Source: Mantamonas sphyraenae STR306
Taxonomy: Eukaryota; Protista; CRuMs
Assembly (NCBI GenBank): GCA_026936335.1
Contig: JAPMXV010000007.1
Location: 248,001 to 312,000, forward strand
DNA: 64,000 bases
Direction: 5' to 3'
Shown: positions 21,959 to 50,042 of the stretch, in pieces
How the letters are laid out: each line of letters begins with the position of its first letter
How positions within the stretch are numbered: position 1 is the stretch's first letter
Made by a program: the position numbers and the translations under genes
The notes under the pieces: model-generated
What the model was told of the DNA's origin: nothing
Seen by the model: the letters and a program-made list of their open reading frames with translations, nothing else
The model's database searches: none

Positions 21959-22155
21959 AGAGAGAGGCGTGTTGGAGGTGTCCTTCATTGTTTGTGTGAA
22001 TCGATTTGTGGTCCCTATACAGCCTTGGCGCGTTACCTCTTTGCGGTGTGTGTGTGTGTGTGTGTCTGCGTGTGTTTGCGTGTGTGGCACAGGGAGGGAG
22101 CGGCTGGGGACGCGTTTGCGGAACCACGCGAACCGAACCGCAACAGAGAGCATAG

Positions 22156-22527
22156 ATGAGCCAGGCGGACGGAGAACAGCAGATTGTGAAAACGGTACTC
22201 AAGTTGGGTGGGAAGGGCAGCAAACCTGGCAAGGGTCAATCGTTGAAGCTGTGGGTGGAGGATGGCCAGCTGAAGTTTGAGCATCACACTTCAGCTCGTT
22301 CGGCTGGGCCCTCTGTCAGGACCACCATTGAGTATGGCACACTGGACGCAGAGAGTATGGTGGCCCATGTGAACAGGTCGCACACGACCCGATCATCGCG
22401 AAACGAGCGTGAGGAGTCGGAGGAGGAGCGAGACGAAGACCACACCTGGTCCAAGGACAACCTGGAGATCATCACTCACTACAGCACCCAACCGTACATG
22501 CTTCCAGAGGAGTTTGAATGGCCTTGA
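22156..22527 (+). CDS. Unrecognised small beta-rich protein family, copy A (123 aa, inverted, most divergent)
   Basis: YGTLDAESMVA...EDHTWSKD...ITH...PEEFEWP shares the family motifs. Confidence 0.7.
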   Translation: MSQADGEQQIVKTVLKLGGKGSKPGKGQSLKLWVEDGQLKFEHHTSARSAGPSVRTTIEYGTLDAESMVAHVNRSHTTRSSRNEREESEEERDEDHTWSKDNLEIITHYSTQPYMLPEEFEWP

Positions 22528-22848
22528 GAGGGATACGAGGGATGGGGGAGGGTGAGGACACACACACACACACACAAGAAAGGAACGCAAACGCGATGTC
22601 ACTTCACTTCCTGTTCACACAGCACTTGCACTTGCACACGCACACACACACATACACACATACACGCCCGGGTGCACTGCTCCAAAGGTGTGACCAGCAC
22701 CACTCCACGCGGTGTGGGGATGTGTGAATGCAAAGAGGGAGGGAGTGAGAAGAAGCAAGGTTTTCCGAACGTTGCGCATCACGACGACGGAGTGATGGGG
22801 AAAACAACAGATTGGGACAACGTCCACGGTTCATTCAGCGCATGTGGA

Positions 22849-23214
22849 TCACTCAAAGGGCACGGTGACATCGTCGGGGACAATAAATTCCATCTTCTCG
22901 GGATGGTGGGTGAGGAGGCCGCGGGTGTCTGCGTTCCAGGTCCAGGTGTGTTCCTCGCTGAGGTCTTTCTCCTTGTCGGACCTTGTGTTGACAAAAGAGG
23001 ACTTTTCCGTGACGGTGGCAGTCATGGAGCTGGGGTCAAACGTGCCCGTCTCGGTGTACCCGCGGCTCATTCCGTGGCCTCCGGGCATCTCCACGTAGTT
23101 GCGACGCTTCACCTTCCACGCAGTGTACGTGTCGTCCGTCCAGGTCAGTTTGAACTCATCTCGTTCAGTCAGTTGGCCTTCAGCAGGTTCCCAGGTGATT
23201 TCGGCTTGCGACAT
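22849..23214 (-). CDS. Unrecognised family, copy B (121 aa)
   Basis: TGTFDPSSMTA...EEHTWTWNADTRGLLTH. Confidence 0.8.
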   Translation of the reverse strand: MSQAEITWEPAEGQLTERDEFKLTWTDDTYTAWKVKRRNYVEMPGGHGMSRGYTETGTFDPSSMTATVTEKSSFVNTRSDKEKDLSEEHTWTWNADTRGLLTHHPEKMEFIVPDDVTVPFE

Positions 23215-23472
23215 GGTGTTTGGGTTCGTTGTTTGCGTTGCAGCGTTTGGCGCTAGAACGACGCAAACGCGTCAAAAACCTCGTCGCAACACAAACGCGT
23301 CGTGATGTGCGGCCCACACGACGCCTACACAGTGTACCGCAATGCACAATGCCATCCACACAGGAACCACAACGCATTGCGTACGACTATGTGTGCGTGG
23401 CAATGACAGGAGAAGCAGGGAAGGGCAAAAGGTCAACAATGACACAGCAAACGCTCGGATTCAATTTTGTGT

Positions 23473-23853
23473 TCATTTGTCCCAGGGCAGCTCCACACCC
23501 TCCTCCTCGGGTTGTAGGCGCTTGCCACGGTGGTGATGTGTGGTCAACTCCTTGGCTTCACTGTCCCACTCCCACGTGTACTCCTCGGTGAGCCCCTCGT
23601 GGACGTCGTGGTCGGTGGTGTTGATGTACGTGCTCTTGCGTGTGACCACAGCCACCATGGTCTCTGGGTTGAAGTCACCCTCTTCCCATGCCCCTTGCGT
23701 CACGCCGTGGCCTCGGCGTGCCACGTAGTGGCTCGTGTCGCTGCCCCACTTTGTGAATTTGTTGTTTTTGAATGTCAACGTAAAGTGGTCGCGGTCCTCC
23801 AGCACTCCTGCCACAGGGACAAGTCTGATGTTTGCGTTGTCGCTCTCGCTCAT
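23473..23853 (-). CDS. Unrecognised family, copy C (126 aa)
   Basis: EGDFNPETMVA...EEYTWEWDSEAKELTTH. Closest to copy B (shared E.RD.F.LT and GHG motifs). Confidence 0.8.
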   Translation of the reverse strand: MSESDNANIRLVPVAGVLEDRDHFTLTFKNNKFTKWGSDTSHYVARRGHGVTQGAWEEGDFNPETMVAVVTRKSTYINTTDHDVHEGLTEEYTWEWDSEAKELTTHHHRGKRLQPEEEGVELPWDK

Positions 23854-24184
23854 GGTGAAAACGGGGGGTGGGTGTGTGTGTGTGGGGGGGGGTTGTGTGT
23901 TTGTGTGGTGTTTGCGGCGGAGAGCCCGCCACACCGTTTTTTGTTCCCACAACACCCACACACCACTCTGCACCGTGAATCCAGCACAAATACATCCAAT
24001 GCGTCCTGTGGAGAGAGATTGTGTGTTTCTGGAAGATGGAGATGTGTGTTTCAACGGCACAGTGCAAACAACTCTGATTCCCACCCTGCATGCATGCCGT
24101 TGACGTGCAACAACCACAAGTGCACTGGGCACTGCGCACGAAACCGTACATTTGCCATATGACGCATCCACACCATTGCTGTGT

Positions 24185-24598
24185 TCACCAGGCCCACTGG
24201 AACCCCTGTGGAGGATGAAAGTTGCCCAGGTGTGTGCTGAGGACACGTAGGTCACCATCCCATGCCCATGTGTGCTTCTCCTGCTTCTCTTTGACATCTT
24301 GGGTGGCACCATCGGCGGCCACTTCCACCATGAGCTCCTCTGCTTCCATGGTGGTGGGGTCAAAGGTACCACGCAGCGTGGTGGTGGTTGTGGACGGCCC
24401 CACGTTTCCTGCGTCATCCACACTGCCCTGGATGCTGCTTGTGGTCGTTGTGTGCGTCCATGTGCTCAGGGCGTCGTCGTGAAAGTCCATGGTGCGTTCG
24501 TTGCCTTTGCGCATCTGTTCTTCCTGTTCCTCCGTCGCGTAGGACCACCTCTGTGCGCTCTGCTCATGCACACTCTCCATCACACTCGATGTACTCAT
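24185..24598 (-). CDS. Unrecognised family, copy D (137 aa)
   Basis: RGTFDPTTMEA...EKHTWAWDGDLRVLSTHLG..HPPQGFQWAW. Confidence 0.8.
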   Translation of the reverse strand: MSTSSVMESVHEQSAQRWSYATEEQEEQMRKGNERTMDFHDDALSTWTHTTTTSSIQGSVDDAGNVGPSTTTTTLRGTFDPTTMEAEELMVEVAADGATQDVKEKQEKHTWAWDGDLRVLSTHLGNFHPPQGFQWAW

Positions 24599-24935
24599 GC
24601 TTGTGGATGCCTCGGTTGGATGCTTGACCTCGTGCGGATGGGTATGCACAGCCACACGCCTGGGTTTTTCGTTTGGGCCGGCCGGCGACTTTTCCTTCTC
24701 GTCCCAAGTGCACGCCAGAAGGACACGGAAGAGGCATGCACACTGGGGACGGCATCCCTCGCATAAAAGGTGTGCCTGCACCACGGCAACAAGAGTGTGG
24801 GTGGCATGTGGGAAGGCAGAGGGCCGTCGTGGAAAGAGCCGTTTTGGCGCTGCCGCCGCTACGATTTCCGCCCGCAGCAACAAACACAGAGGGGTTGGAT
24901 GGATGGGTGTGTGCGCCTCCGCGTACATTTGCTAA

Positions 24936-25445
24936 TCACCACTTCCATTGGAACCCCTGCGGGGCGACGACAGTGCCGACGTGTGTCTTGAGGGCGGCTG
25001 CGTCGCCGTCCCAGGACCAGGTGTGCTCTTCGGGCTCGTCGTGCTCCTTGTCGCTGGCCACCAACCCGTTGACAGTGATCTTTGTGCGCAGGACCTTGGC
25101 TTGCATGGTTTCAGGGTTGAAGCTGCCCGTGGTTTCTGTGACCTGTGTGCTGGGTCCGCCGTCGTTGTCCCCTTCTTCTTGGGCCCCGTCCAGGGTTTGC
25201 TTGTGCTCCTGCACACTCCACGTGCTGAGTCCCTCGGTGTCATCAAAGTCAAACGTGGTGGTGTTGCCGCTGATGAGTGCACTCATGTCCTCCTCCGACT
25301 GCAGGTGCCACGAACTCTTGGTGGTGTCCTCAATGCCCGTCGACAGCATCGATGCAAACGTGTCTGCGTCAATCGAGTGTTCCTCATCGTGGCTGTGGTC
25401 GGGCGTGTCGATGTTGAAAAAGTTGGCCTCTTCCGCTTCAGACAT
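24936..25445 (-). CDS. Unrecognised family, copy E (169 aa)
   Basis: TGSFNPETMQA...EEHTWSWDGDAAALKTHVG..VAPQGFQWKW. Confidence 0.8.
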   Translation of the reverse strand: MSEAEEANFFNIDTPDHSHDEEHSIDADTFASMLSTGIEDTTKSSWHLQSEEDMSALISGNTTTFDFDDTEGLSTWSVQEHKQTLDGAQEEGDNDGGPSTQVTETTGSFNPETMQAKVLRTKITVNGLVASDKEHDEPEEHTWSWDGDAAALKTHVGTVVAPQGFQWKW

Positions 25446-25799
25446 GGTCGGTAGCGATTTCGTGGCCACCGCAGCGCGAGTCAAACAGGACACCATCCTC
25501 ACACACATCGCACCATGGTGTCCACTGTTTCTTGACCCCATGAGGATGGATGGTGGTGGTGGGGGAGACGTGTGTGTTGTGCAGCGCACCACTTCGGGGA
25601 GCGGACACCGCTGTGCTGTGCTGCTTGACCCCTCTCAAAGTGGCCACAAACAAGGAATGGATAACCTGGCAGTGCCTTGCAAATCGCTAGCTGCAGTGCT
25701 TGGTCAACGTTTTGACCCGGAAACGCGTGTACGTGCAATGTCGGGGCCGCGTGAACAAACAATCCACGCGCCTGCCAAACCACATCGAAAGAAAACGGC

Positions 25800-27140
25800 A
25801 TGAACGATCGTGTTGCTTTTGCCCTCTTGCTGCTCGCATGCGCATGCAGCGCCGCTTCTTCCTGCTCTGTTGTGACACAGAACGGACACACGCTGGACTT
25901 TTCCCCATTGGCCGGTGTGAAGCTGTCTCTGAACGACTCGCAAGACGACCAGTACATTTTCACGATGTGTGAAGACTTGCCCTCCACGCCGTATCCCACC
26001 TGCTCCAAGAATGCACAGTCTGTGCAGATCTTGGCCAACTCGTACTGTGTCGTGACAGGCACAGCTGCGCAAGCGTCGTGGAACAGCACCGGAGACTACG
26101 CCAGTGTGACGTACGGAGGCGGGCAACGTTGCGGCGACGGAACAATGCGAAATTTCCAGATCAACTTTGTCTGCGATCCAGACCATGAAGTTCAAGCTGT
26201 GGGACAAGTGCAAGAGGAACCATTGGGCTCGTGCCACTATTCTGCCACTGTCAACACGCGCTATGCATGTGTCAACACACCTCCGGCGCCCAAGGCCTGC
26301 AGCGTCCGCACCGCAAATGGCAACACCCTGGACTTTTCGCCTCTGGCTGGCACCAAGCTGTCCCTTGAGGATGCGGACGAGAACACGTACTACTTCACCC
26401 TGTGTGAGAACTTTGCCTCGGGCACGTTTGCCACGTGCACAGGCGTTGGTGAGAGCTTCCAGGTTGCCCCCCCCAGTGAGTTCTGCACCATGACCGGGGT
26501 TGCAGACCAGCAGAGCTGGAAGAGCAGTGGAGACGACGTGGCTGTCACGTATGGCGGTGGGAAGAAGTGTGGCAACACACCACGTCAGTTTTCCATCAAC
26601 CTCAAGTGTGATCCCAACCACGAGGCACAGCCCATGGGTCAGGTGCAAGAGGTGCCAGCAGGCTCGTGCCACTATGTGGCCACTGTCAACACACGACACG
26701 CGTGTGTCAACAGCCCACCCCATGCCGATTGCAACGTGAAAACGCAGAGTGGGTTTGTGCTGGACTTTGAAGCGATTGCGGACATGACACTGGCCTCATC
26801 GGACGCCAATGGGAACAAGTACACGTTTGGTGTGTGCAGCAACGCACAAGCGCCATCCACATGCAGCCAACAAGAGTCTGAGGGGTACATGGTGGCATCC
26901 AACGGGTACTGCACCACGGTGGGATCGCTCGACAAGCAGACGTGGAACAGCACGGGAGACTATGTGTCTGTCACGTACGGTGGAGGACAGGCGTGTGGCA
27001 ATGTCAACCGCTCGTTCATGATTGACTTTCTGTGCGACAAGTCGACCGAGGCACAGGTGGTGGGTCAGACCATCGAAGCCCCAGCTGGATCCTGCCAGTA
27101 TGTGCAACGTGTCAAGTCCAAGTACGCATGCACCGATTGA
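25800..27140 (+). CDS. Secreted lectin with three tandem mannose-6-phosphate receptor homology (MRH) domains and no TM segment
   Basis: Signal peptide, then three repeats of about 140 aa: G..LDF..LA, Y.F..C, VTYGGG..CG...R.F.I...CD, E.P.GSC.Y...V.T..AC. Confidence 0.85.
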   Translation: MNDRVAFALLLLACACSAASSCSVVTQNGHTLDFSPLAGVKLSLNDSQDDQYIFTMCEDLPSTPYPTCSKNAQSVQILANSYCVVTGTAAQASWNSTGDYASVTYGGGQRCGDGTMRNFQINFVCDPDHEVQAVGQVQEEPLGSCHYSATVNTRYACVNTPPAPKACSVRTANGNTLDFSPLAGTKLSLEDADENTYYFTLCENFASGTFATCTGVGESFQVAPPSEFCTMTGVADQQSWKSSGDDVAVTYGGGKKCGNTPRQFSINLKCDPNHEAQPMGQVQEVPAGSCHYVATVNTRHACVNSPPHADCNVKTQSGFVLDFEAIADMTLASSDANGNKYTFGVCSNAQAPSTCSQQESEGYMVASNGYCTTVGSLDKQTWNSTGDYVSVTYGGGQACGNVNRSFMIDFLCDKSTEAQVVGQTIEAPAGSCQYVQRVKSKYACTD

Positions 27141-27252
27141 AGGGAATGATGATGATGAGCAGGTTGAAGAGGATGGGCAGGATGGGTGGTTCATTTCTCT
27201 GCAGCCAAGGAAGAGTATTATGTTCTTAATATATGTTCTTCATCATAATCAT

Positions 27253-27483
27253 TCATGACTCCCACCGCCAGTCAAAGCCGTCTGGGGCAAGCACATTGCC
27301 ATTGTGTGTTTTCAGCGTGCGTGCGTCGCCATCCCACGTCCACGTGTGTTCCTTTGGTTCGTCAAACTCTTCGTTGCTCACTTCCTCGCCGTTTGTCACG
27401 ACCTTTTTCGACAGCTCTTTTGCCAGCCCGCTATCCGGATCAAACGACCCTTTCGTGGTCTCGGTGCGACTGGCGTTGCTCAT
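27253..27483 (-). CDS. Unrecognised family, copy F (76 aa, C-terminal half only; may be truncated or have an unseen 5' exon)
   Basis: KGSFDPDSGLA...KEHTWTWDGDARTLKTHNG..LAPDGFDWRW. Confidence 0.7.
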   Translation of the reverse strand: MSNASRTETTKGSFDPDSGLAKELSKKVVTNGEEVSNEEFDEPKEHTWTWDGDARTLKTHNGNVLAPDGFDWRWES

Positions 27484-27633
27484 TGCGCGGTGGGTTGGTG
27501 GGTGGGGTTTCCGGGCCCCCACAAACGCGGTTCTCTCCCTTCCCTCCCTCCCCAACGCATCCTCACACGCAGCGGAATTGAACCCACGCACACTTCATCA
27601 CATTGCAAGAGAAGCCATAGAAGCAACACTCGA

Positions 27634-28068
27634 TCACTCATCGGTGTTCCATTTGTCCCATTTGAACCCTTCCGGCCCCAACACGTCTCCCAAGTGCGTC
27701 CTGAGCACACCCGCATCCTCATCCCACTCCCAAACATGCTCCTCATCACATTCGGTCTCTTCCACCACCTCGCCATCCTTCTTCACCACCACACGCAACA
27801 CCTTGGCCTTCAGCGACTCCTTGTCAAACGTCCCCGACACCTCCTCCTCCTTGCCCACCAGCCCACCGTACCCTCCTGTTCCAGCGGTGTCCATGTCCAC
27901 GTTGGTCCATGACCACTGCTCCATCCCAGGCCCACTGCTCTCATCGTCCGCAAACGCAAAGATCACCCCTTTGCCGCTCACCATCGCATCCAGTTGACTT
28001 TCATGGTGAAACATGCCCTTGATGTTCTCCTCCATCGATGCCAAAAAGTTCATTACCCCCGTGGCCAT
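27634..28068 (-). CDS. Unrecognised family, copy G (144 aa)
   Basis: SGTFDKESLKA...EEHVWEWDEDAGVLRTHLG..LGPEGFKW. Confidence 0.8.
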   Translation of the reverse strand: MATGVMNFLASMEENIKGMFHHESQLDAMVSGKGVIFAFADDESSGPGMEQWSWTNVDMDTAGTGGYGGLVGKEEEVSGTFDKESLKAKVLRVVVKKDGEVVEETECDEEHVWEWDEDAGVLRTHLGDVLGPEGFKWDKWNTDE

Positions 28069-28127
28069 GGTCTCACTCACTCGCGCTCTTCTCTCGCTTT
28101 CAATGCGATGTGTTGTGCCCACCTGTG

Positions 28128-28586
28128 TCACCATTTCCACACAAAATCTTGTGGCGCGTTCACAGCACCCTCATGTGTGGTCAACACGCGTGCATGGTCA
28201 TCCCATGTCCACGTGTGCGTCTTTTCACCCTCTCCATACGTGATGGGCTCCGACGCTTCGCCATTGGTGCGTGTTTGTTGACGTCGCGTTTGTGCAATCC
28301 CCGTGCTCGGGTCAAACACTCCCGTCGTCTCCACAGTGGATGTCATCGGACCATTGCTGGTCAGGTTGCGATACGTCACTTCCACTCTCCACTTGCTCAG
28401 ACCCGTCTCATCCTCGAATTCAAACCACGTTTCGCTTCCATCCTCCCCGTACGTCTCCTGTACCTCCCACATCCCACGTGCAACCTTGTAATTGACCACC
28501 ACTACCTTCCCATCATCCTCTCCGTCCGACTCTTCTTCTTCTTTCCTATCTTGGTGGCCCCCAAACAGGCTCTTGACCCACGACAT
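28128..28586 (-). CDS. Unrecognised family, copy H (152 aa)
   Basis: TGVFDPSTGIA...KTHTWTWDDHARVLTTHEG..NAPQDFVWKW. Confidence 0.8.
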   Translation of the reverse strand: MSWVKSLFGGHQDRKEEEESDGEDDGKVVVVNYKVARGMWEVQETYGEDGSETWFEFEDETGLSKWRVEVTYRNLTSNGPMTSTVETTGVFDPSTGIAQTRRQQTRTNGEASEPITYGEGEKTHTWTWDDHARVLTTHEGAVNAPQDFVWKW

Positions 28587-34967: not shown

Positions 34968-37900
34968 TCACCAACTCCAGAACCCCTTCTTCTTCTCTTC
35001 CTTCTTCTCCTCCTCCTTCGCCTTACCCTTGCCCTTGCCAGCGTCGCCTGCCCCATCCTTCTCCTTGCCCTTGCCCTTCCCGCTCGAGCTGCCGCTGCCA
35101 CCTGTGCCACCACCTGCACTCGAACTCGCCCCATCCTCCTCACGGTCACTCACCCACTGGTCAATCACCGCATTCACCTTCTCCTTGATCTTCTGACACT
35201 GGCGCACATCACTGCATCGCACATCGTACTCCTCCTCCTTGCCACCCAGCCCAAACAAGCCCTTGTCCTCACGGTTCACACTGGTCACCTGCAGACCACG
35301 CTCCTTCAGACGCACACTCTTCACCTTTTCAAACGGAAGCATCCACTCGCTCGAGTACTTTTCCTTGTCGCACGTCAACACACGCTTGCTCGTCACCAGG
35401 AACACCTGCCCCTCCTCCTCGTAGTGGTACTCCCACAGGTCCGTCAACACATACTTGCCCTTGTCCACACGGAACAACACGTCCTGTCCACGCGCCTCAA
35501 ACTCGCTGTACTCGCGCAACACCCCGTCCAGATGAAAATGCCGCGGCACACGCACCCGTTCCTCGCTCAGGTCCTCAAACGTGTTCTTGATCCCCTCTCC
35601 CGTCTTTGTCGCCAGATCCAACACCCCAGCCACAGGCTTCACCGCCACTCCCATCACTCCCTTGCCCAGACCCGCCACAAACCCGCCGAATCCACCTTCC
35701 TCTGCACCCTGCATCGGTGCCGTCACAAGGCCCGTCACACCCTCAAAGATGCCCGTACCCAGATCCTGCACGCCCATCCACAGTCCCTCTGCCGCGTTGC
35801 TTGGCCTGTCAAACGCTGCCTCCCTTCGCGTGATGTACTCCTGGTCCATCGAAATCGACGCCAGGCCCTTGCCCACGCTCCCGGTGATCTTGGATGCCGT
35901 CGAGAATGCCGCCCCCACCGTACCCTTCACCAGACTCACCGTGCCCTTGCCCACACCCACTGCAAACGCCTCGGGGCTCTCCACCAGTCCCTGCGCAGGC
36001 TCGTAGAAAAAGTCCTTCACCCCCGTGCCCAGACTCGTCACCAAACCCACCGGATCGCCCAAAAAGTCAAACGACCCAAGCACCTTGTACGCCTGTGTCA
36101 ACGCCTGCATCGCATAGTGGTGCGACACCTGGTTCACAAACGCACCCTGCGTCGCAAACAGATGCTCCACCATCAGTGCGTTCAGCTCAATCGGCGCACC
36201 GTCCAGGTTGATAAACGCAATGCCCAGCGCAGACAGCAACACACGCAGAGGGTTCTTCATCTGATCCTCCTCAATCTCAGCCGTGCTGCCACGGCTGCGG
36301 AACGACAGGTTCACCTTGATCGGATTCAGCAGCATGAACGCACAGTACAGCTTGCTCAGCGACGAGTGTTCACTCGGCGTCGGAATGAACTTCACCTTGG
36401 TCAGCTGGTCCAGTGCACTCGCCTGCTCTTCGCTCGCACTCGAGTAACGCATCACTGCGTCCAGGAAGATGCTCAGGAACGTCTCTTCCAACTTCACGTC
36501 AAACTCCTGCATGCCAAACGAAAAGTAGTTCAGGAACAGCAGACTCGTGTTCAGGTTCGACTTGACCAGCGACACGTGCAGGAACGCCTTGTCGCTCTTC
36601 TTGTCCGTGCTACGCAGCACCACCGGGTACCGCGCTCCACGCAGCTGGTTGTCCAGCTGCAGACGCAACACACGCACGTCCACCTTGTCGTCTGCCTCGC
36701 AATGGCTGTATCGCACAGCCACGTCCTGCAGACTCAGGTACGCCACCTCCTTGGGTTCCCCGTCCACAAACGACACTCCCACACCCGCCAGTGCAACCTT
36801 CACCACAAGCTCCTCGTCCGTCTGTCCACTCTCCACCACTTCCACCTCTTCCAGCTCCTCCAGCGCCTCTGTCGCTGTGCTGCCACTCGTCACACTCATG
36901 CGACTGCTGCTCCCGCTCTCCCCGTCCTCCAACACACGTCCCCGACCCTCCAACTCTTCCCGTGTCACTTCCCCAGCCCTGCTCACACGCATCACCTTGG
37001 TCGGTCCGTCCGCAAGCAACTCCACACGCATCTTGTTCCCCTTGCCCGCACGCAAGCTCTTCAGCCGCCCCAGCTTGTCCATCGCATAGCTTCGCTCCCC
37101 AGAGCCCGCACGCACCACAAGCTTCATGTGCTTCTGCGGCTCCGTCCACGTGTATGGCAACACACTCGCTGCCTCCACCTCTGTCGCCGCCTCCTCGTGG
37201 CCCTCCTGCAACACGGTCAGCGTCGCACCCGTAAAGTTCTCCACACGGATCGGCGGGTGACGCATGTCTCCTCGTCGAAGGATCACATACACCATCGAGC
37301 CCACCAGACGCGTCTCCACGTCCACAAAGTAGTTGCGCTCTCCATCCCTGTCCCGCACGTTGTACCCAGGCAGCAGCAGCGCAAAGTCGCTCACCGTCTC
37401 AATGTCAAACGCCCCCGTCCAGCCCTTCTCCGCCTCCACGTCTGCGTCACGCACCTGCAACAGACGCGCTTGCTTGCGATCGCTCCATCGGTACATCGGC
37501 AAACGCTGCCCTGCATGCACATACATCTCCGTGCCATCCTCTGCTCCCGCCTGCTTGAATGCAATCGACACGTCCAGGTCGTTCTGCACCACATACCGCG
37601 GCGTAAACGTCACCATCTTGGTCACTTGGTACTTGCCAGGCGCAAGCGAGATCGAACAGCCCACCACATACGCGCTTCCGTCGCTTCCCTCTGCAGTCAC
37701 CTCGCCGTCGTAGCCCACCGTTTCCAGAGAGAACGCAGACGACCACTTGGTCAGTTCTCCCACGCGCACGTTGGCCTTGCTGCTGGCAATGTCAAACCCA
37801 CTGAACGAAAACAGGTGCGGGTCCACCTCCTCGCTCTCTCCCACACGTTCCACCCAATCCCGCTCCTCCACAATCGATTTGGATGCCGTGCTCGCCTGTC

Positions 37901-40900
37901 CACTCGACATCGTGTTCTCCAGCATGCCATCTTGGGCATACCACAGCGGCAGGCCGCTCTTGTTGATCATCCAGTACGGACAGTACACACTCACCGTGCG
38001 TGCTCCCGTGCCCGACGCAAGGTTGCGCATGCGCAGCGTCAACATCTGTCCGTTCTCGTCCGGCAGCCGCAGGTTCAGCGCAAGCTTGTCCTCGGAAAAG
38101 ATCACCTCGGGCTCACACCATTCGTACCCATCCAGGCGCACTTCCAGACGCACCGGCGACTCCAGACTCGGCTCCATCACAGGCACGCGCTGTCCGCTCT
38201 CCAGCACCCCTTCACGCAGCACCTTGCCCTCCACACGCTTTGCCTTGCCCTTGTCCATGTCCAACGGCGCATCCTCAGAAATGCGATACTCCATCGTCAG
38301 CGGCAACAGGTTCTCCAACGCAAGCGGCGCACTCACCTGCACACGCCACGACTTTTCCTTGAACGACAACTCGTTGCGCACACGCAGGTACTGCGAGTCA
38401 CTCGGACGTCCGTCCAGCATGGCACACCGCACCACAAACTGCTCCAGCTTCAGCGCATCCAGCGACACAAACAGGCTGCTAAAGTCGCATTCATGTCGCC
38501 CGTTCACAGGGCGTACAAACACGACGCCGTCCTCCACCGCATACAGCGGCACAGGCACAGAGTTGCCAGCCGCACACAGCAGGCGTTCCTCCTTGTGCGA
38601 GGAGTCGTACTTGAGCAGAAACTCCACGTCGTGTGTGCTTGCGTTGGCCAGGATCACGTTGCTTCGCACCACAATCTCCTTGGCCCCCTGGTTCAGGCGC
38701 ACCTCGCAGATCACAGGCTGCTCCATTTCGTACTGCTTCACAGCCACCGCATCAATGGGCACGCGAGCAACCGTGTTGCCGTTCAGACGCATCGTCACCG
38801 CACGGTGGCACGCAACCTTGGTAAACACACGCTGCTTCGTTTTCGCACGCACCTCCAGCATCACCACAGACCCCGCAGAGCTCAGCACATGCGACTCTTC
38901 CTTTGTCTCCAGCGAAAAGTCAAACGCATGCAGCTCTCCGTGCGTCGCAGGCACCTTTTCCCACTTCTCCTCACGCCGCAGACGGAATTGGTGTTTCGAC
39001 TCCTCCGCCACAAGCTCTTGCTTGAACTCCAGCGGCATGCCCGTCTCGTTGCGGATGTAGTATGCGCTGAACTGCTTCATGTCTTCCGCCTCGCCGGCGT
39101 CCAACACACGCGTGCGCTCCTTGGCAAAGTCCTCCGACCACGTCTGCGCAGTCGTCACAAGCGACTCGATTGCCGCCTCCGTCACGTTTACGTTCAGCAT
39201 CTTCTTCGCACTCATCGTCACCTCGGTGCGTCCCTTGTAGTCAAACGCCTCTGCGTCGTGTGCCACCTCCACGTGGAAGCCCCACCGCTCCACAATCGGC
39301 TCCCACAGCGCGATGCGGTTGTTGAACGAGTTTAGCGTCACACCCACGTCCACGTTCACACACAGCTCCTCCGACCAGTTGCTCACGTCCACGTCCAACT
39401 TCTCCACCTGGAACTGCAGCACGGGCGTCATGTGCAGTTGGCCCAGGCAATCGTTGATCACCTGCAGGTCAAATCCGTTCAGACGCACCACTGCCGTCTC
39501 CTCCACCTTGGGGATCTCCAGCTCCTCCCCACTCTCGTCGTAGATGCGCCTGTTGCGTCGCCTCTCTGCTGCCCGCTTGCGCTTAAGACGCGCCCGCTCC
39601 TTCTCAATGCGTTCCTGCCGCGCTTCCTCGCTTGCCTCCTCCTGCTCCGCTTTGCTCACCGTCCACTCCAGTTCGTTCTCCAACTCGTCGTCAGACACAT
39701 CGCCTCCCTCGCCTCCGCCGCCGCTGCTGCTCTCTGGCGGAACAAAGGACTGGGCCACCGCAATCATCAACTTGGTGTCCTCGTACGACAGCCTGGCCGT
39801 GATCGGATCCACATCCACCACCGCCTGCACGTTGTACGGCTGGCCGTGCTTCAGTGCCGCAATGTACGTCACACTCAGGTTGTGCGGCTCCACCACATAC
39901 ACCGTGTTCTCCTTGCCCGCGTGCCTGTGCTGCACACTAAACTGCTGTTCCTGTCCGCTCATCATCACCTTGACGTGTGTGCTGTTGCTCCTCACATTGG
40001 CATCAAACGACGCCGTCATCGTAAGCCGGTTGCTTTCGCTGTCCGATGCGTCCTCAATCATCACAATCTCAGGGTCCCGCACCTTGACGCGCACATTCAC
40101 CTCCTTTTCAAACTCCGTCACTGCACGCAGGCGCTGCACTTCGGCCAGCAGCCTTTGCAGCTCCACATCTTCGTCTTCTTCGTCCTCCTCGTCGATGTCT
40201 TCCACCCCGCTGCTGCTTCCGCTGCTTGCAGTGCTCTTCAGCGCGTGTGTGCGTCGCTTCGGAGCCCCTCCTCCCACCACAGCGGTGATTTCCTGTACCG
40301 GCTCCACTCCCTGTGGCTTTTCCACGGCGTACGCAATCAGACGTTGCACACTCTCCCCCACCGCCGTGATCTGCGGATGCTGCACCTCCACATGCACGTT
40401 GATCGTCTCCTGCCGCTCCTCCGGGTCACGCTTCTGCTCCATGTGCACAAACAGCAACTCGTTGCGCATGCGCCGCACGGTCTGTTCCTCGCCTTCGCTG
40501 GCTTCGCTTGCTTCGCTAGCCTCGCTGTCCTCGTCAAAGATGGGACACATCAGCGTGCGGAACTGGCTTGTGCTCTTTGCGTACGTGTCTCGCAACACGA
40601 CTTCCTGCAACTCCACAGTCACCGTCAGATGGCTCTTGCTGCTCTCGCGCACAGCCACACCCAGCCCTTGCAGTTCAAACTGGGCAATGCTCGTCGACAC
40701 TCCCTCCTCGTCCACACCCGTGCCCATCAGCATGTCCAACGTCACCTGCTTCAGTGCAACCTGCACATCGGTGACCACATACTCATCGCTGCGGAACCGT
40801 TGCAGTTCCTCCTCCAGCTTCACCTTGGCCAAGCGTCGCTGCGATTCCGCTGCACTCGACCGTGCCTGCGACACAATCAGCGCCGTCACATCGTCGCCCT

Positions 40901-43900
40901 CCTTGCCCTCCATCTGCTCCAAGGTCACCAGGCTGGTGTCCTCGTCCAGGCTCACGCTCGCACTCTGGCTCAGCGCGTTGTCCAACAGCGATGCATCCGA
41001 CGTCGCCAGCGTTGCGCTCTCGGCAAAGTTTTCCACGCCGATGCACGTGAGCAGATGCAACGTCACCTGAGACACCTGCGCCTCAACCTTGCCCACATCC
41101 AACGACATGTGCATCTGTGGGATCCTGTGCTCGTGCACGTCCACAGGACGCACCAGCTCCATGTCCACGTTCACATCCCGCACAACCTGCGACGTCTCCT
41201 CGTCTGCCAGGCTGCTGCGCAGGTGCAAACGTCGCACCGCAAGCGTCATCTTGTCCACTGTGATGTCATCGTGTGCAGGCGACGCCACAAACTCGTTGTG
41301 CAGGTCGATCACACCCAGGTTGATCACAAGCACCTCGTCCGACGTGCTCCTGCGTGGCACCACCACATACGGGTTCTCCACACGGATGTCCATCTTGGTC
41401 ATCACGTTGTCTTCCCCTGCCATCTGGTGTGCTGCCGCCGCCGCTGCCACGCTCGCCGCACTTGCCGCCGCAGCGACAAGCACCTGCATGTCCTGCATCT
41501 CCGAAAAGTACAGCGACACCTCGTCCACAAATCGGTTCAGCAGCACAAAGCGCACCGAACGCACATTCAGCTCCAGAGCCGTCTCCCATCCGGGGTACTC
41601 CAACGACCCACGCGTGAACGTGTCCACCTTGACAAACGCCACCTGCTGTCCGCTCTCTGCACAGCTCATCACTCGCGAGTACTTCTCTCCCGCAGGCGTC
41701 AGATCCACAATGCTCACGTTGTCCAGCCCTGCCGACAGGCTCACGCTTGTGTCGTCGTACAGCACAAGGTCGGTTGCAGCTCCCTCCACCGCAAACATCC
41801 CAATCGGCGTTTCCGACTCCTTGAACAGCACCACGTTCACAGCACCCAGCTTGGCCACAAGCTTCAGCTGCTGCGCACGCTTCTTCACCAGCTTCTCCCC
41901 GTCATGCCCACCGCTGCTGCTGCCTCCTGATGCTCCTTCCTCGCCTGTCGTCGTCTTCTCTTGTCCCTCCTTGCCCTTGCGTACCGCGTCACGGCGTTCC
42001 TTTCGCTGCCGTTCCTTCTCCTCCTCTTCACGCTCGATTTCGTCCTGCGTGGTGCCAATGTCCTGGATCATCGACGTGGCTGCGTTGACACGGTTGCTGC
42101 GGTTCAGCTGGTTCGCCCAGTCCAACACACCCACCAGCGTGCTGCGATTGATGCCCACACTCAGGTACGAAAAGTCCAGCTCCAACAGCTGCTCCACGCC
42201 GTTGTACTTGCTCTCAAACTCTGGCGACGTTGGATGCACCGCCACAAACGACACAGCAATCAGGTACTCCTCTTCGGGTTCGTCGATTTCCTCCACCTCC
42301 TCGTCCGAATCCACCTCACCCTGGTCCACGGCCAGTGCCAGCTGAGCCTTTTGCTCCTCTGCACGCAGGCGTTGCCACCATTCCCGGTTGACACTGCTGG
42401 CAAAGTAGGCTCCCTCACGATCGGCCAGCGAGTCGGCAATATGCAACGAGTGGATGCGCACGTCCGCCGTCAGGTCAAAGGTGCGTTGCAGAAGCGACAC
42501 CGCAATGTCCTTCAGTTCCATGTGCATCAGCTCCTGGTTGTACTCGGGTCGGCCTGGCACGTTGACCACACGCGCCAATGACACCGAGATGGAGTGCACC
42601 TTGAATTCGGCGTCCACAAGCACCCGTTTGATCATGGTTGCGCGTGCCGTCTCGTCCATGTCCTCAAACAACCGCTTCTTGCGCTCGTCTGCACTCAGCA
42701 CCGCCTGATGCGCCTTTTCCTTGCGGCTGCTGCTGCGTCCCACGCCTTTACCCCCTTCTCCGCCTTCGTCGTCGGTCACACTGTGCAGGATGCTGTCCAC
42801 GCGATGCACCCCCTCCATGTACGACGCATAGTCCACGGTTTCCCCAGGCGCACTCGTCGACGCATAGCGCTTGGTGGGACGCCGCAGCAAACTCGGGTCC
42901 TTGTCCTTGATTTCGTCAATGACAGGCGTGGCCAGCTCCTCCACAACGTCCATCAGCAGGTCAAACTTCTTTTCCGAAATGGCCAGCGAGAGCGAGGGCA
43001 ACGTGCCCTCCAGCTTCACCTGAGTGTACTCGGGATTGTTTGGCAGGATGCACTGGTGCACAGCCAGGTTGAGGGACACCGGCGCAAGCAGCGTGTGTGC
43101 CTCCACGTCAAACGACTCTGGCAGAGGCCAGGTGCTCGTCTCGCACACCAGTGCATGCACATCGGCCATGTCAAACTGAAAGTGGTCGTAGAGCGACGAC
43201 TTGGCAATCTCTGTGTCCACACCCGTGGAGCTCTCCCTGTCCTGACGGATGTCTGTGGTTGCATGCAGCGTACCCAAATCCACCACCAGCATGCGTCCGC
43301 TCTCACGCAGCACGTCCTGTGGCACCAGGATCTGCGGGGCGTCCAGCTTCACGTCCAGATCCAGCAGCACGTGGTCTCGCACCGCCTGCTCCAACGAGTC
43401 CCGTGTGCGTTCCTGCAGCTGCTCCAATTGCAGCAGCGCCGCCGTCTCGATGCTGCGCAGCCTGTCCCTCTCCTCGGGGGCAATTGTGAAAAAGTTGACC
43501 ACTGCCATGATGCAGCGGCTGCCATATACCACGTCCAGCGACTGCACGTCCAGCGACACTTTGTAGTTGGCTGCACTGTCCATGGGATTCACCACCAGAC
43601 CAAAGTCCACAAAGCTTCTGTGGCTGCCGTCTGCTTCGGCGTCGTGCACCACCTCACCAACCTCTGCCTGCGACTTTGTCTTGTGCACAGGCTTCTCCGC
43701 CTCTGCCTCGGTGCCGTGCACGTGGTTGTGTGCCACGCTCTTCTGCACCAGCACAGGGAACTGCGACGCTTCGCCACTGAGAAGATCTTCGAGCATCAGC
43801 GACTCCAGGCATCCGCTGATGTCCAACGTGTCCAGACGCTTGCTCAGGTTGACCCCAAACCCTGTGTACGACAGCTGGGCAATCGGTTGCAAGCTGCCGT

Positions 43901-44966
43901 TCGACGCGTGTCGTGTCAGACGCACGGAAAACTCGCGGAGGAGACTGGTAAACACCAGCGACGGAGGCATGTCTGCCAGCGTGCGCTTGCCCCCTTGGCC
44001 ACCTTCTTCCGATCCAGAAGAGGAGGACGAGGAAGAGGAGGACGATGCCTTCCCGTCCTTATCCATGCCTGCCACCGCCTTGGCCACATCCTTTGTGGTG
44101 CCCTCTTCCACATAGCCAATGCTCAGCAGAAACTGCTGGCGTCCCTCCTCGCCAATGCGAGTGCCCAAATCCAAATCGCTGACGGCAAATTCCTCATCGT
44201 CGTCCTCCTCCTCCACGGCCTTGCGTCCAAACGAGAACAGACTCTTCTTCTTGACGGGCTTCTTCAGCTTGGCCATCTCCTTGTCGTGCTGCATGATGCG
44301 ATACTTGGCTTCGGCCATGGCACGGTAGCGTACGAGGTCGTCAAAGTCCAACTTGTGTTCCAGACGCTCCTTGGTGGCCTTGTCCTCCTCGCTCAGGGGC
44401 TTCTTTGTGTTCAGCGAACGACGCCACACCTTGATGTACTCCTTGCGGTCGTCCCTGCGCTCCTGAAAGTACTCCCACGTCCAATGGCGTCTCTCTTCAC
44501 GCACATCCTTCAGCACGCGTGTGTATGCGTATTGCCACCACTGCTCCGGCGCCTCCATGGGCTCCGCATCGGGACGCATGGCAGCCACCTCTTCGTCGGC
44601 GACCAACGCAGACATGTATGCTGCCACGGACAGCACGTCTGTCATCTGATCGTCACGCAGCTCCAGACCCACCCTTTCCAGGGTCACACCAAGTACGTTG
44701 CGTGGAGCAGAAGCTGCCAACGCCTCGTCTTTCAACTGGTCCAGTGTCATGTCCACACTCAACGGCGCAAGGATGTACTGCAGCTCCCCACTTTCCTCCT
44801 TGCTGTGCACCAAGTCTCGCATCAGATCTGCAATCTGCTTGGCATCCGTCACTGATGACACCGACAACTGGTTGTCAGGGTTCCAGTACACGCTGAGGCC
44901 ATCCAGATCCAGACGCTGTGTGCAGTGGGTGGATGGATGGATGGCATGTCAGGGTCAGGTACCACA

Positions 44967-46627: not shown

Positions 46628-49600
46628 TCAATCCTCCTTGCTGGCGTCAAAGGAGATGTACCGCCTGCGATACAGATAGTAGCTGATGGCCAACGAGATA
46701 AGGATGACCACAAGGGTGCCGACAATGGCCAGGGTGCTGACAAGCTCGCTGAGGGGGCCACCAAAGACCTCGACGGCAAACTCGAGTTCGAGCTCGCAGT
46801 AGCTGACATCGGGGGCCACCACCTTGACACGAAAGACAAAGAGACCATCGCGACCTGTGAAACGCAGTGCACTGAAACCTGTGCCATTGAGGATGGGGTA
46901 CGGGGTGTCTGCCAAGCGACGTTGCCTCTCGTCCTGGGTCAGGGAGGCCTCGTCGCCTGTGGGTGGAGCAAAGCAATGTTGGTAGCTCTGACGGGACCAA
47001 GCATTGGCTGGCTGGTTGTTGGCAGCCTTGAGCTGGGTGTCCCACACCTGGGGCATTCGTTTACACCCCACAGACTGGGCAGTGGCATTGTACGAATAGT
47101 CGAAGCGACCGTTGACGTCGTAGATGACATAGTCTGCGTTGAGGGTGCCCACGCGTGTGTCGCCGTCGTAAATGTCAAAGGCAGGCAGATAGGCAGACGC
47201 GCCGTGAAAGACGCGTGCAGGACAGCCCAGGCGAGCGTAGTCGTAGGTGAGACCCGTGCGGTCGGTGCCCACAGGAGTGCCCGAGTAGTCGGGATTGCTG
47301 ACACTGCCTGGCACAGAGTAGGTGTGGCTGGCGCCGCCTGGTTTGTATGCATCGCAATTGGCACGCTGGTTGGCCCGCAGCACCAGGCGACGGTTGGGTG
47401 GGCATCCCACACGGACGCGTGCCACATGTTGAGGGGCATCACAGGCCAGAGAGGTGGATGCTGGGACCACACGCACGTCTGTTTCGCCCTGGGCCTGTTG
47501 ACGCTGGGCAAACGAGGTGGAGAAGCGTCCGCGTTCGACCACGTCAACCTGTGTCTGCTTGCGTGTGACCGAGGTGGTGGCAGTGACAAACACGGGTGTG
47601 CGTGTGGTGGCCACAGACTGAAAGGCAATAAAGGTGAGGTCGGAGGTGGAGACACTCATGTCGTTGCTGAATCCAGGTTTGGGTGTCAGCGAGGTCTCCA
47701 GACGCAGACGTTCGCCCAGATCCAGGTAGGACACAGAAGGCAGGTTGTCGCTGCGATCAAAGTATGTACAGGACAGCGGTGGATTGGAGGCCACAGGCAC
47801 GCGTGTGGCACTCAATTCGTTGTCCAGAGGCACCGCACGTGTGTGCACCCAGCCATTGCCACCCGCCTGGTTGTTGTTGTTGTTGTTGCTGCTGCTGTTG
47901 CTGATGTCCACACTCAGCACCTGCAGCGTGGAGGCCAGGGAAAAGGAAAGGCTGGCCGAGGCCTGGTTGCGACCGATGCCACTCTGCAGCTCCACGGTGT
48001 CCGCCACCCCAGACTTGCCCACAAACACACGCTTCCAATTGGTCAACACGGCATAGTTGCCATTCAAGGCGGTGGCCACCTGTTCCACGTGTTCTGTGGC
48101 TGCCAGTCCCTTGGCAGGGCGTGCGGGATCCCTCGAGGTCAATTGCGAGGGGACAAAGGTCACACCGCCATCGACACTGTACAACACAGCGTCACCGTAG
48201 ACCAGCAGCTCACCCGAACCACTGGCAAAGGTGGTCATGGCAGGCACACTTGCAGAGCGGCCTGTGACACTGAGATCACCCGTGAGCGATGCCAGCTGCG
48301 ACCACACTTGTGGCACCAGGCCATAGCGCAGCAAGATGTTCACGCCTGCCTTGCGTGCCAACACCAGATGGGCATTGGCACTGGCCAAGTGTTCGGCCTG
48401 GTACACGACATCGCCATTGGCCAGGCCATGCCCTGTGGGCAGGGTGGAGAAGGAGCGACCGGCGTCGGTGGACATCCACAGTGCTGTGGTTGTGCCTGTG
48501 CCGACGTTGGTGCGCCAGGCAAAGAGGATGCTGTTGGAGGGTGCACTGGCACCGGATTGGGTGCGCAGTGGGTTGCAGTAGGGCAGTTGACTGAGGTGGG
48601 TCAGATCAAAGGAGGAGGAAGGATAGGAGGAGGGAAAGGAGGCAGACACAAAGGTGAGCGAATCGGAGGTGCTGACCACACCCGTGTTTGTGAGCAACAC
48701 CAGACGACCCGAAAGCAACGCCACGTCACGCAGGGTGTTGCTTCCCGATGGCAACACGGACGATGCCACAGCCAGCCATTCCGTGTCACTTCCCTGCCAT
48801 TGGGTTTGACTGAACAGCAGTGCAGTGCTACTGGACAACGAACCAGCCGTCAGCGTTGGCAACGCCGCCACCACGTTGCCCGCACAGGCATCGACACGTG
48901 CACGCAACGCACCAAACACGGCATTGGAGGAGGGTGTGGCACGCGTGTACGCGGCATTGGAGGAGGAGGAGGAGGAGGAGGAGGAGGAGGAGGAGGAGGA
49001 GCTCAAGGCGGATGGGCTGGCTGGCACATGGCCGGTCAGCGAAAGGACGGCGGCACGGTCTTCCACCAGGCAGTTGAGGACACTGATGGCATTGCTGGAG
49101 AGGACAAAAGGCAACGAGGATGGAATGGGAGCATCGGCATTGACACGCAGAGTCATGGTCCACACAGCCAGGGCTGAATCAAAGGCAAGGGCACTCGCCT
49201 GCACGGTGATCCTCTGTAGATGGGCAGGCAGCGAGGGGAATGTCACCTCTGGACTGCTGCCCAGTCGTTGGTACATTCGGCTCAGTTGTGCCGACACTGC
49301 TGATGGGCTGGTGGCTGTGCCGTTTGTTTCGTCGGCCGCGGCCCGGCTGGCATCCAGCACCCACACACGCGCCGTAAACTGAGCGCCTGCGCCTGTGCGC
49401 CCCACAGGCAACTGAAGCCTCGTAAAAGCAGACGATGGGATGGCGGAGGTGTCTGATGCAGACACAATGGCCATGTACCATTGGTAGCACGGCGCAGACT
49501 GCTCCAGGTTGAGGAAGAAGGAATCGCGCTGGCCGTTGGTCTCGACGGCGAAACGGTGTTGGCCACGCGTGGTGCAGAAGACCTGCACAGAGGTCACATT

Positions 49601-49915
49601 GGCAACCTGTGTGTACGCACCACTGCTGTGTGTGCTCACCCAGCCTGAAGATTGGCTGGGTTGCACCACCGAACAGGCTGTGGGCACGCGCCAACGCAGG
49701 TCGCTGCCCTGAACCGAACTCCCGTTGGCCAGCGACACAAACGTCAGCTCGATGGTCTCTTTGGTGCGCAACACCGAGCTGTCCATGCCCAAACTGCGGT
49801 AGTGGACTCGGAAGTGGCCGAATTCGTCGTCGGATGCTGCTGCCCATGTGCAGGTGGCACCCAGCAGCAGCAGCGTGCAAACGACAACACAAGCCAACAG
49901 CACGCCCTTGGACAT
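46628..49915 (-). CDS. CatSper auxiliary subunit epsilon/delta-like type-I membrane protein (about 1,095 aa, intronless)
   Basis: Signal peptide and large ectodomain. The C-terminal VGCPP, YDYARLGCP, ADYVIYDVNGRFDYSYN, GC...PQVW, W....YQHCF, PYPILN, G.FVFRVKVV.P..SYCEL...FAVEVFG and single TM helix match the CATSPERE/D C-terminal pattern. Confidence 0.8.
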   Translation of the reverse strand: MSKGVLLACVVVCTLLLLGATCTWAAASDDEFGHFRVHYRSLGMDSSVLRTKETIELTFVSLANGSSVQGSDLRWRVPTACSVVQPSQSSGWVSTHSSGAYTQVANVTSVQVFCTTRGQHRFAVETNGQRDSFFLNLEQSAPCYQWYMAIVSASDTSAIPSSAFTRLQLPVGRTGAGAQFTARVWVLDASRAAADETNGTATSPSAVSAQLSRMYQRLGSSPEVTFPSLPAHLQRITVQASALAFDSALAVWTMTLRVNADAPIPSSLPFVLSSNAISVLNCLVEDRAAVLSLTGHVPASPSALSSSSSSSSSSSSSSSNAAYTRATPSSNAVFGALRARVDACAGNVVAALPTLTAGSLSSSTALLFSQTQWQGSDTEWLAVASSVLPSGSNTLRDVALLSGRLVLLTNTGVVSTSDSLTFVSASFPSSYPSSSFDLTHLSQLPYCNPLRTQSGASAPSNSILFAWRTNVGTGTTTALWMSTDAGRSFSTLPTGHGLANGDVVYQAEHLASANAHLVLARKAGVNILLRYGLVPQVWSQLASLTGDLSVTGRSASVPAMTTFASGSGELLVYGDAVLYSVDGGVTFVPSQLTSRDPARPAKGLAATEHVEQVATALNGNYAVLTNWKRVFVGKSGVADTVELQSGIGRNQASASLSFSLASTLQVLSVDISNSSSNNNNNNQAGGNGWVHTRAVPLDNELSATRVPVASNPPLSCTYFDRSDNLPSVSYLDLGERLRLETSLTPKPGFSNDMSVSTSDLTFIAFQSVATTRTPVFVTATTSVTRKQTQVDVVERGRFSTSFAQRQQAQGETDVRVVPASTSLACDAPQHVARVRVGCPPNRRLVLRANQRANCDAYKPGGASHTYSVPGSVSNPDYSGTPVGTDRTGLTYDYARLGCPARVFHGASAYLPAFDIYDGDTRVGTLNADYVIYDVNGRFDYSYNATAQSVGCKRMPQVWDTQLKAANNQPANAWSRQSYQHCFAPPTGDEASLTQDERQRRLADTPYPILNGTGFSALRFTGRDGLFVFRVKVVAPDVSYCELELEFAVEVFGGPLSELVSTLAIVGTLVVILISLAISYYLYRRRYISFDASKED
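48959..49001. repeat. (GGA)n trinucleotide repeat encoding poly-Ser in the CatSper-like gene
   Basis: About 14 GGA units. Confidence 0.9.
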
Positions 49916-50042
49916 CTCTCTTGGGTTGGCCACACAAGCGCACATGACACCAAACAAGAGCCCATGGACACACACACACACACACTCCCTCTCTCTCTCT
50001 CTCTCTGTGGAACACACACTCACAATGTGGACTTCATTTCGC

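Follow-up and report, generated by a model that had tools for sequence, protein, structure and literature searches.

The 64,000-nucleotide stretch of the Mantamonas sphyraenae STR306 genome analysed here (contig JAPMXV010000007.1, positions 248,001 to 312,000, forward strand; hereafter the window) contains, at positions 22156-28586, a tandem array of eight small open reading frames (ORFs), A to H, encoding proteins of 76-169 amino acids (aa). ORF calling returned the coordinates, strands and lengths at which the original prediction, made from the sequence alone, had placed eight related genes (Table 1). Their relatedness was confirmed by leaving out each protein in turn: a profile hidden Markov model (HMM) of the others recovered all eight members, with E-values from 1e-10 to 7e-29 (6.6e-29 for gene E). 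We also carried out the genome search that the prediction had proposed; searching the whole assembly with the family profile returned exactly the eight array genes and one unlinked paralogue on contig 17. An HMM built without this ninth member recovered it at an E-value of 2e-7, and it keeps the motifs G-T-L-D-P and P-D-G-W-N-W. Reading frames are intact in all nine family genes.

A multiple alignment of the eight array proteins has six invariant columns: the Gly of G-x-F-D-P, an Ala 4-9 residues on, the Trp of H-T-W, the Thr and the His of a Thr-His pair, and the Pro preceding the C-terminal aromatic motif. The prediction had described an ordered signature shared by all copies; the alignment bears out the order of its elements but not their uniformity. 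The motifs of A are degenerate (GTLDA and DHTWSKD), G reads GTFDK, with Lys replacing Pro, C reads EYTW, with Tyr replacing His, and the C-terminal P-x-G-F-x-W-x-W is clean in D-H only, being degenerate in A-C. The proposed invariance of the Thr-His pair holds throughout the array, with the pair absent from the unlinked ninth copy. The conserved residues lie mostly in the last five strands of the predicted fold described below; it is in the N-terminal strands, the loops and the acidic tails that the copies differ. An internal duplication of the domain, pairing F-x-F-x-D-D..L-S-x-W in the N-terminal half with H-T-W-x-W-D..L-x-T-H in the C-terminal half, was considered and found to be unsupported (hhalign P 0.21 over 12 columns).

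Pairwise BLASTP comparisons, with E-values scaled to a proteome-sized database, gave 5e-7 to 3e-23 within D-H, 1e-19 between B and C, and 2e-4 to 5e-7 between B and D, E or F. Gene A is only weakly connected in this way (best pairwise E-value 0.003); an HMM of the other seven nevertheless finds it at 1.2e-10. A maximum-likelihood tree groups B with C (support 99/97) and D-H together (83/79), and places A and the ninth copy on long branches, in agreement with the subgroups first proposed (B/C, D-H and a separate A). The physical properties are likewise as predicted: the array proteins are acidic and rich in tryptophan (isoelectric point (pI) 4.2-5.3; Trp 2.4-5.3 %), with a grand average of hydropathy (GRAVY) of -0.5 to -1.2 and Cys present in G only. 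None of them has a signal peptide or transmembrane segment, the maximum 19-residue Kyte-Doolittle mean being 0.51 or less, versus 2.09 for the signal peptide of the protein encoded by an adjacent gene with mannose-6-phosphate-receptor-homology (MRH) repeats.

The nature of the reading frames required separate evidence: each of the six frames of the array sequence, whose content of guanine plus cytosine (GC) is 59 %, has long ORFs, which makes ORF length alone uninformative. Between paralogues, the proportion of synonymous differences (pS) is saturated at 0.60-0.81, versus a proportion of nonsynonymous differences (pN) of 0.33-0.60; this paralogue comparison, a form of the selection check that the prediction had called for, came out in favour of constraint. 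Identity at codon positions 1/2/3 is 0.46/0.50/0.36, making the third the least conserved, with a chance expectation of 0.30 at that position. For the invariant residues Gly, Ala, Thr, His and Pro, the copies use differing synonymous codons. GC content is higher at third codon positions (0.61-0.78) than at second (0.37-0.48), and an ACCATG-type start context is found at B, C, E and G. The long anti-sense ORFs within the array had no Pfam match. These comparisons show the array to be a genuine protein-coding gene family under purifying selection.

The expansion is also old, as had been suggested. Terminal branches of the tree measure ~0.4-2 changes per site, and these long branches, together with saturated synonymous sites and frame-specific conservation, point to ancient duplications whose copies have been retained by purifying selection. 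DNA-level repeats in the region are limited to (TG)n microsatellites and to the codons for two conserved motifs, E-H-T-W-x-W-D and G-F-x-W; the lack of long DNA repeats rules out an origin by recent duplication, as a transposon cluster or as a segmental repeat.

One member, F, is half-sized. BLASTP aligns it to E over 68 residues with 59 % identity; compared with E it has pN 0.33 and pS 0.80, and it is under purifying selection. Only 150 nt separate the F ATG from the G stop codon, which leaves no room for a hidden remnant of an N-terminal half.

A 12-mer, GACGCGTTTGCG, precedes A, B and the unlinked ninth gene at a distance of 36-70 nt; at the ninth gene, on contig 17, the copy is exact and lies ~60 nt upstream. 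Allowing the form GACGCGTTTG(C/T)G and counting exact or one-mismatch copies, there is one upstream of A and there are two upstream of B, the second being the variant GACGCGTTTGTG; F has a partial match upstream, and C, D, E, G and H have no element within two mismatches at the right place. The exact 12-mer occurs at 26 sites in the 25 Mb genome and is not commoner than a control word (30 sites). The oriented upstream sequences of the nine family genes, ~900 nt in total, contain three of the 26 sites, against ~5e-4 expected by chance. Because the paralogues that carry the element have saturated synonymous sites, it has been kept by selection rather than by recent copying, and its presence before A, B and the ninth gene argues for common regulation. 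A wider regulon was considered and rejected: most of the other 23 sites fall within genes unrelated to the family (those for NAD synthase, PRPP synthetase, exportin-5 and a filamin-repeat protein) or beside no convincing gene, and they offer no clue to function. We also noted the same 12-mer at two further loci, contig 17:154418-157429 and contig 41:145552-148563, in each case 36 nt before apparently identical ORFs; both encode a NAD synthase / CN hydrolase, do not differ over residues 1-70 and are equally long up to the end of the locus, and the pair suggests a segmental duplication.

Table 1 The family genes, their upstream elements and other genes of the window. Positions are those of the window unless a contig is named.
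Feature	Position	Strand	Length	Remarks
Gene A	22156..22527	+	123 aa	Most diverged array member; sole + strand copy
Gene B	22849..23214	-	121 aa	Most compact of the full-length members
Gene C	23473..23853	-	126 aa	Sister of B
Gene D	24185..24598	-	137 aa	
Gene E	24936..25445	-	169 aa	Acidic, long N-terminal extension
Gene F	27253..27483	-	76 aa	Lacks the N-terminal half of the domain
Gene G	27634..28068	-	144 aa	
Gene H	28128..28586	-	152 aa	
Ninth family member	contig 17:100404-100820	-	139 aa	Intact, unlinked to the array
GACGCGTTTGCG element	22109..22120	+		36 nt upstream of the A ATG
GACGCGTTTGCG element	23262..23273	-		Upstream of B
Second element copy, variant GACGCGTTTGTG	23290..23301	-		Upstream of B
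Triple-MRH protein gene	25800-27140	+	446 aa	Between E and F, in opposite orientation
VPS13 ORF	34968-44891	-	3307 aa	
CATSPERD/E-like ORF	46628-50338	-	1236 aa	

Several features of the array's layout deserve mention. Gene A lies between two inverted microsatellites, a (TG)n tract upstream and a (CA)n tract downstream (22040-22073 and 22558-22591), which are 484 nt apart and could be the breakpoints of an inversion that turned A around. From the stop codon of H to the ATG of G the gap is only 59 nt (28068-28128), and that between G and F is 150 nt; either H, G and F are co-transcribed or their promoters lie inside the upstream gene. The array is split by the triple-MRH gene, whose product has a hydrophobic signal-like N-terminal segment and three tandem MRH repeats (Pfam CIMR 1.1e-20, PRKCSH_1 3.9e-6); we saw no connection between this protein and the array family. 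In Pfam searches, the neighbours of the array are a Kelch-like gene, the MRH lectin and a helix-turn-helix (HTH)/Myb-like gene.

The prediction had recognised no known family in these proteins, and searches of Pfam, protein clusters, HMMER representatives, the ESM Atlas and PDB sequences indeed returned no relatives. A word-indexed search of 5.8 billion protein clusters, with E and with an alignment of the C-terminal halves, found none. The family HMM had three matches among 1.84 billion protein representatives searched with HMMER, all of them bacterial repeat proteins: a giant protein with type IX secretion system (T9SS)/PKD features, a Calx-beta protein and an astacin with propeller-like repeats. 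We rejected all three as spurious, a short hairpin motif having been matched repeatedly. The ESM Atlas gave no usable match with H or B, and a PDB sequence profile search gave E-values of 0.45 or worse. Matches in metagenome and viral contigs, with D, E, F and H as queries, were also spurious, one covering part of a bacterial permease-like gene out of frame and the other spanning only 11 residues. The protein collection searched holds none of the nine family proteins, and mantamonad relatives may be absent from it too; for the conserved USP47-like neighbour the closest match in the collection is only 31 % identical. Within that scope, the family appears to be without detectable sequence relatives outside mantamonads. 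Because the duplications are old, M. vickermani or M. plastica is likely to carry it.

To describe the fold we used two AlphaFold2 models, of D and of B, which belong to different subgroups, each built from the nine-row family alignment. The D model has a mean predicted local distance difference test score (pLDDT) of 79.5, exceeding 90 in the C-terminal half; the B model has a pLDDT of 87.9, a predicted template modelling score of 0.78 and nine strands. Both are all-beta meanders of 8-9 strands, with strands of 10-13 residues, and are free of helices save for one short turn in D. Structural alignment with VIA-align matched D to the streptavidin-like 4jgl (Z 7.2), BcnB (7.1), PagP/OmpA/OprF (~7), YceI (6.7) and VtrC (6.6), and matched B to VtrC (8.0), OprF (7.7), PagL (7.4), 4jgl (7.3) and BcnB (7.3), best Z values of 7-8 being typical for models without a true relative (the tool's stated noise ceiling). 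When B was re-aligned to the top 1000 chains from Foldseek, the best match was 5kew_B, VtrC with a bile salt (Z 9.1, root-mean-square deviation 3.6 A over 105 of 121 residues); behind it came ToxS, several avidins, retinol-binding protein and nitrophorins. Since Z 7-8 is the usual noise level, these scores establish a shared topology but neither homology nor function. The two models agree and calycin-type barrels dominate the soluble matches, so that an eight-stranded, calycin-like up-and-down barrel is the best description of the predicted fold. The earlier guess of a calycin/FABP-like or streptavidin-like barrel thus finds support, at the level of prediction, in two models and their VIA matches.

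We compared this predicted barrel with named families. The closest in structure is VtrC, an open eight-stranded barrel of the calycin superfamily that holds a bile salt in a hydrophobic chamber and is closed by a strand of VtrA (PMC4933562). VtrC and ToxS, periplasmic sensors of Vibrio (5kew_B, 5kev_B, 8alo_B), resemble the predicted Mantamonas barrel in size, in their long strands and in their eight-stranded up-and-down topology. VtrC is the best match to the B model, yet at only 2-3 % identity and with no sequence signal, which makes it an analogy of fold and not evidence of membership; moreover, VtrC is bacterial, membrane-anchored and periplasmic, with VtrA as its obligate partner, whereas the Mantamonas proteins have no transmembrane segment, signal peptide or VtrA-like neighbour. 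Avidins and streptavidin-like proteins (4jgl BACEGG_01519, rhizavidin, shwanavidin and hoefavidin) would likewise share a small eight-stranded meander with a Trp-rich interior, 4jgl scoring Z 7.2-7.3 and avidins ~5; however, avidins are secreted, usually oligomeric and have defined biotin-contact residues, and no family protein has a Pfam avidin match. YceI, BcnA and BcnB, bacterial lipocalin-like proteins that bind polyisoprenoids or antibiotics, reach Z 6.1-7.3 over ~100 residues and are elongated eight-stranded barrels with hydrophobic ligands, but they are secreted or periplasmic and have no sequence similarity to the family, and YceI is larger (~170 aa).

Cytosolic fatty-acid-binding proteins (FABPs) are small, signal-less barrel binders that occur as multi-paralogue repertoires with different ligand preferences, which makes them the closest functional analogy; but they have ten strands and a helix-turn-helix lid, have no Pfam match here and are not among the top structural matches. 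The likeness of the models to OmpA, OprF, PagP and PagL in strand number, strand length and meander topology (Z 6.8-7.7) is purely geometric, in that these barrels are seated in membranes and have hydrophobic exteriors, whereas the family is hydrophilic and has no targeting signal. GID4/Vid24 barrels score Z 5.3-6.4, no better than unrelated barrels, and no family protein has a Pfam Vid24 match. The family carries none of the sequence hallmarks of lipocalins, FABPs, avidins, VtrC/ToxS, GID4 or OmpA-type barrels, and has the predicted topology alone in common with them. It is best regarded, on the strength of the models, as a new family of small calycin-like beta-barrels that falls outside every named family and is not a new kind of system; the prediction's "undescribed system" was an overstatement, for this is an orphan gene family and not a demonstrated multi-part system.

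On balance, we lean towards a Mantamonas-lineage family of small, soluble, presumably cytosolic calycin-type barrels whose likeliest activity is the binding of hydrophobic small molecules or peptides. Each full-length protein would be a small, acidic, almost Cys-free, soluble domain folded as an eight-stranded up-and-down antiparallel barrel of the lipocalin, FABP, avidin or VtrC kind, with the G-x-F-D-P, E-H-T-W-x-W-D, L-x-T-H-x-G and G-F-x-W-x-W motifs on its long C-terminal hairpins. Strand alternation would put the His and both Trp residues of E-H-T-W-x-W on one face, and likewise the Leu and Thr of L-x-T-H and the Phe and both Trp residues of G-F-x-W-x-W; an aromatic ladder directed towards the barrel interior is the simplest reading of the models. 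By hairpin register, the invariant His of Thr-His would lie on the opposite face, beside the conserved Thr of H-T-W. By analogy with calycins, a hydrophobic small molecule or a peptide segment may be bound inside the barrel or at its mouth, and the anciently diverged copies may serve different ligands or conditions. That the proteins are cytosolic, that the ladder faces inwards and that they act by binding are inferences; ligand or peptide binding is ranked first because the well-understood soluble proteins of the same topology in the match lists all bind in this way.

Several results weigh against such a binder. Pfam hmmscan of all eight proteins, with E-values up to 1, gave noise only and no lipocalin, FABP or avidin model. 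The structural check that the prediction had proposed succeeded in its AlphaFold half, with all-beta models, and failed in its Foldseek half: comparison of the models with the PDB and BFVD found nothing significant (best E-values 0.16-0.26). The VIA matches, at Z 7-9 and 2-10 % identity, lie at or barely above the noise ceiling, and they mix soluble calycins with OmpA-type membrane barrels, a mixture that supports topology only. The G-x-W signature of calycins is not a conserved column, occurring in H only (as G-M-W); most members do have an aromatic residue in the first strand. Conservation falls on the positions that putatively face inwards, and a packed core would explain this no less well than a tunable pocket. 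Finally, F, with ~5 strands in the predicted fold, would not be able to close a barrel alone.

A more ambitious version of the binding proposal strikes us as possible though rather doubtful: the family would be an unseen branch of calycin-like barrels, independently evolved or diverged beyond recognition, that forms an intracellular repertoire of binding modules, in which some partial barrels, such as half-size F, are completed by another subunit and part of the family is under its own cis-element, GACGCGTTTGCG.

The pattern of a conserved core with variable regions fits either a calycin-like binder with a variable mouth or an interaction module with variable surfaces. The latter is the basis of the strongest rival, which we consider unlikely, namely that these are modules for protein-protein interaction or assembly: open or partial barrels completed by strands of a partner, with F as a complementing subunit and with variable surfaces and acidic tails choosing partners. 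VtrC, the closest analogue in structure, is an obligate heterodimer in which the partner supplies the strand that closes the barrel; F comprises the C-terminal half only, yet is under purifying selection; and core-like aromatic positions are conserved while surfaces, loops and tails vary. Peptide-binding barrels of GID4 and Gid10 are also among the structural matches (Z 5.3-6.4), but these score no better than many unrelated barrels.

Less probable still is that the proteins are hydrophilic protective or storage proteins induced by stress, encystment or starvation, for which abundance and physical properties would matter and specific binding would not. In favour of this are their marked hydrophilicity and acidity (GRAVY -0.5 to -1.2, pI 4.2-5.3), their small size and their multiple copies, and the upstream element common to linked and unlinked members suggests co-induction; however, ordered, confidently predicted beta structure (pLDDT up to 87.9) and strict aromatic motifs are atypical of protectants of the hydrophilin type. 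We regard as very improbable a role as toxin-immunity proteins or as subunits of secretory or extrusive organelles. A diversified tandem array with an embedded gene for a signal-peptide-bearing triple-MRH lectin is all that would favour such a role, whereas the array proteins have no signal peptides, the flanking Kelch-like, MRH lectin and Myb/HTH-like genes include no recognisable toxin-like neighbour, and the anti-sense ORFs of the array are without Pfam matches. That the array consists of chance ORFs or decaying pseudogenes of a GC-rich genome, as long ORFs in every frame might suggest, is effectively refuted by frame-specific conservation with saturated synonymous sites, nine frames that are all intact, HMM E-values down to 7e-29 and confident fold predictions.

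Mantamonas is a member of CRuMs, a supergroup that lies close to the base of Amorphea and has been sampled only sparsely. Its member M. sphyraenae provided the first near-chromosome-scale genome of CRuMs, and the published FALCON assembly comprises 25.06 Mb in 78 contigs with 59.19 % GC (PMC10492846); GC content in the window is 56-61 %. Genes elsewhere in the window include VPS13, CatSper delta/epsilon-like, DIRP/LIN9 and USP47-like genes, and fit a flagellated free-living eukaryote. The CatSper-like ORF matches the CATSPERD/E C-terminal domain (8e-36) and CATSPERE NTD2; a unicellular flagellate thus appears to encode an auxiliary subunit of CatSper, a channel of sperm. The VPS13 ORF aligns to the Pfam N-terminal model from position 218 only; the simple ORF probably misses an upstream exon or an earlier start.

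Orphan families are to be expected in the first genome of a deep-branching supergroup, and the surprise is accordingly moderate. This one stands above the average orphan in its clean motifs, its nine intact and ancient copies, its confident model, its half-size member and its family-specific upstream element. It offers a tractable entry to lineage-specific biology; expression and structure determination should be easy for B, which has 121 residues. If neither ligand binding nor a partner-dependent partial barrel proves true, the family would be one more unremarkable case among the many orphan families that such genomes are expected to contain. If the barrels are partial and need a partner, they would be a eukaryotic parallel to VtrA/VtrC; if they bind ligands, they would be a cytosolic, non-animal counterpart to FABP-type repertoires.

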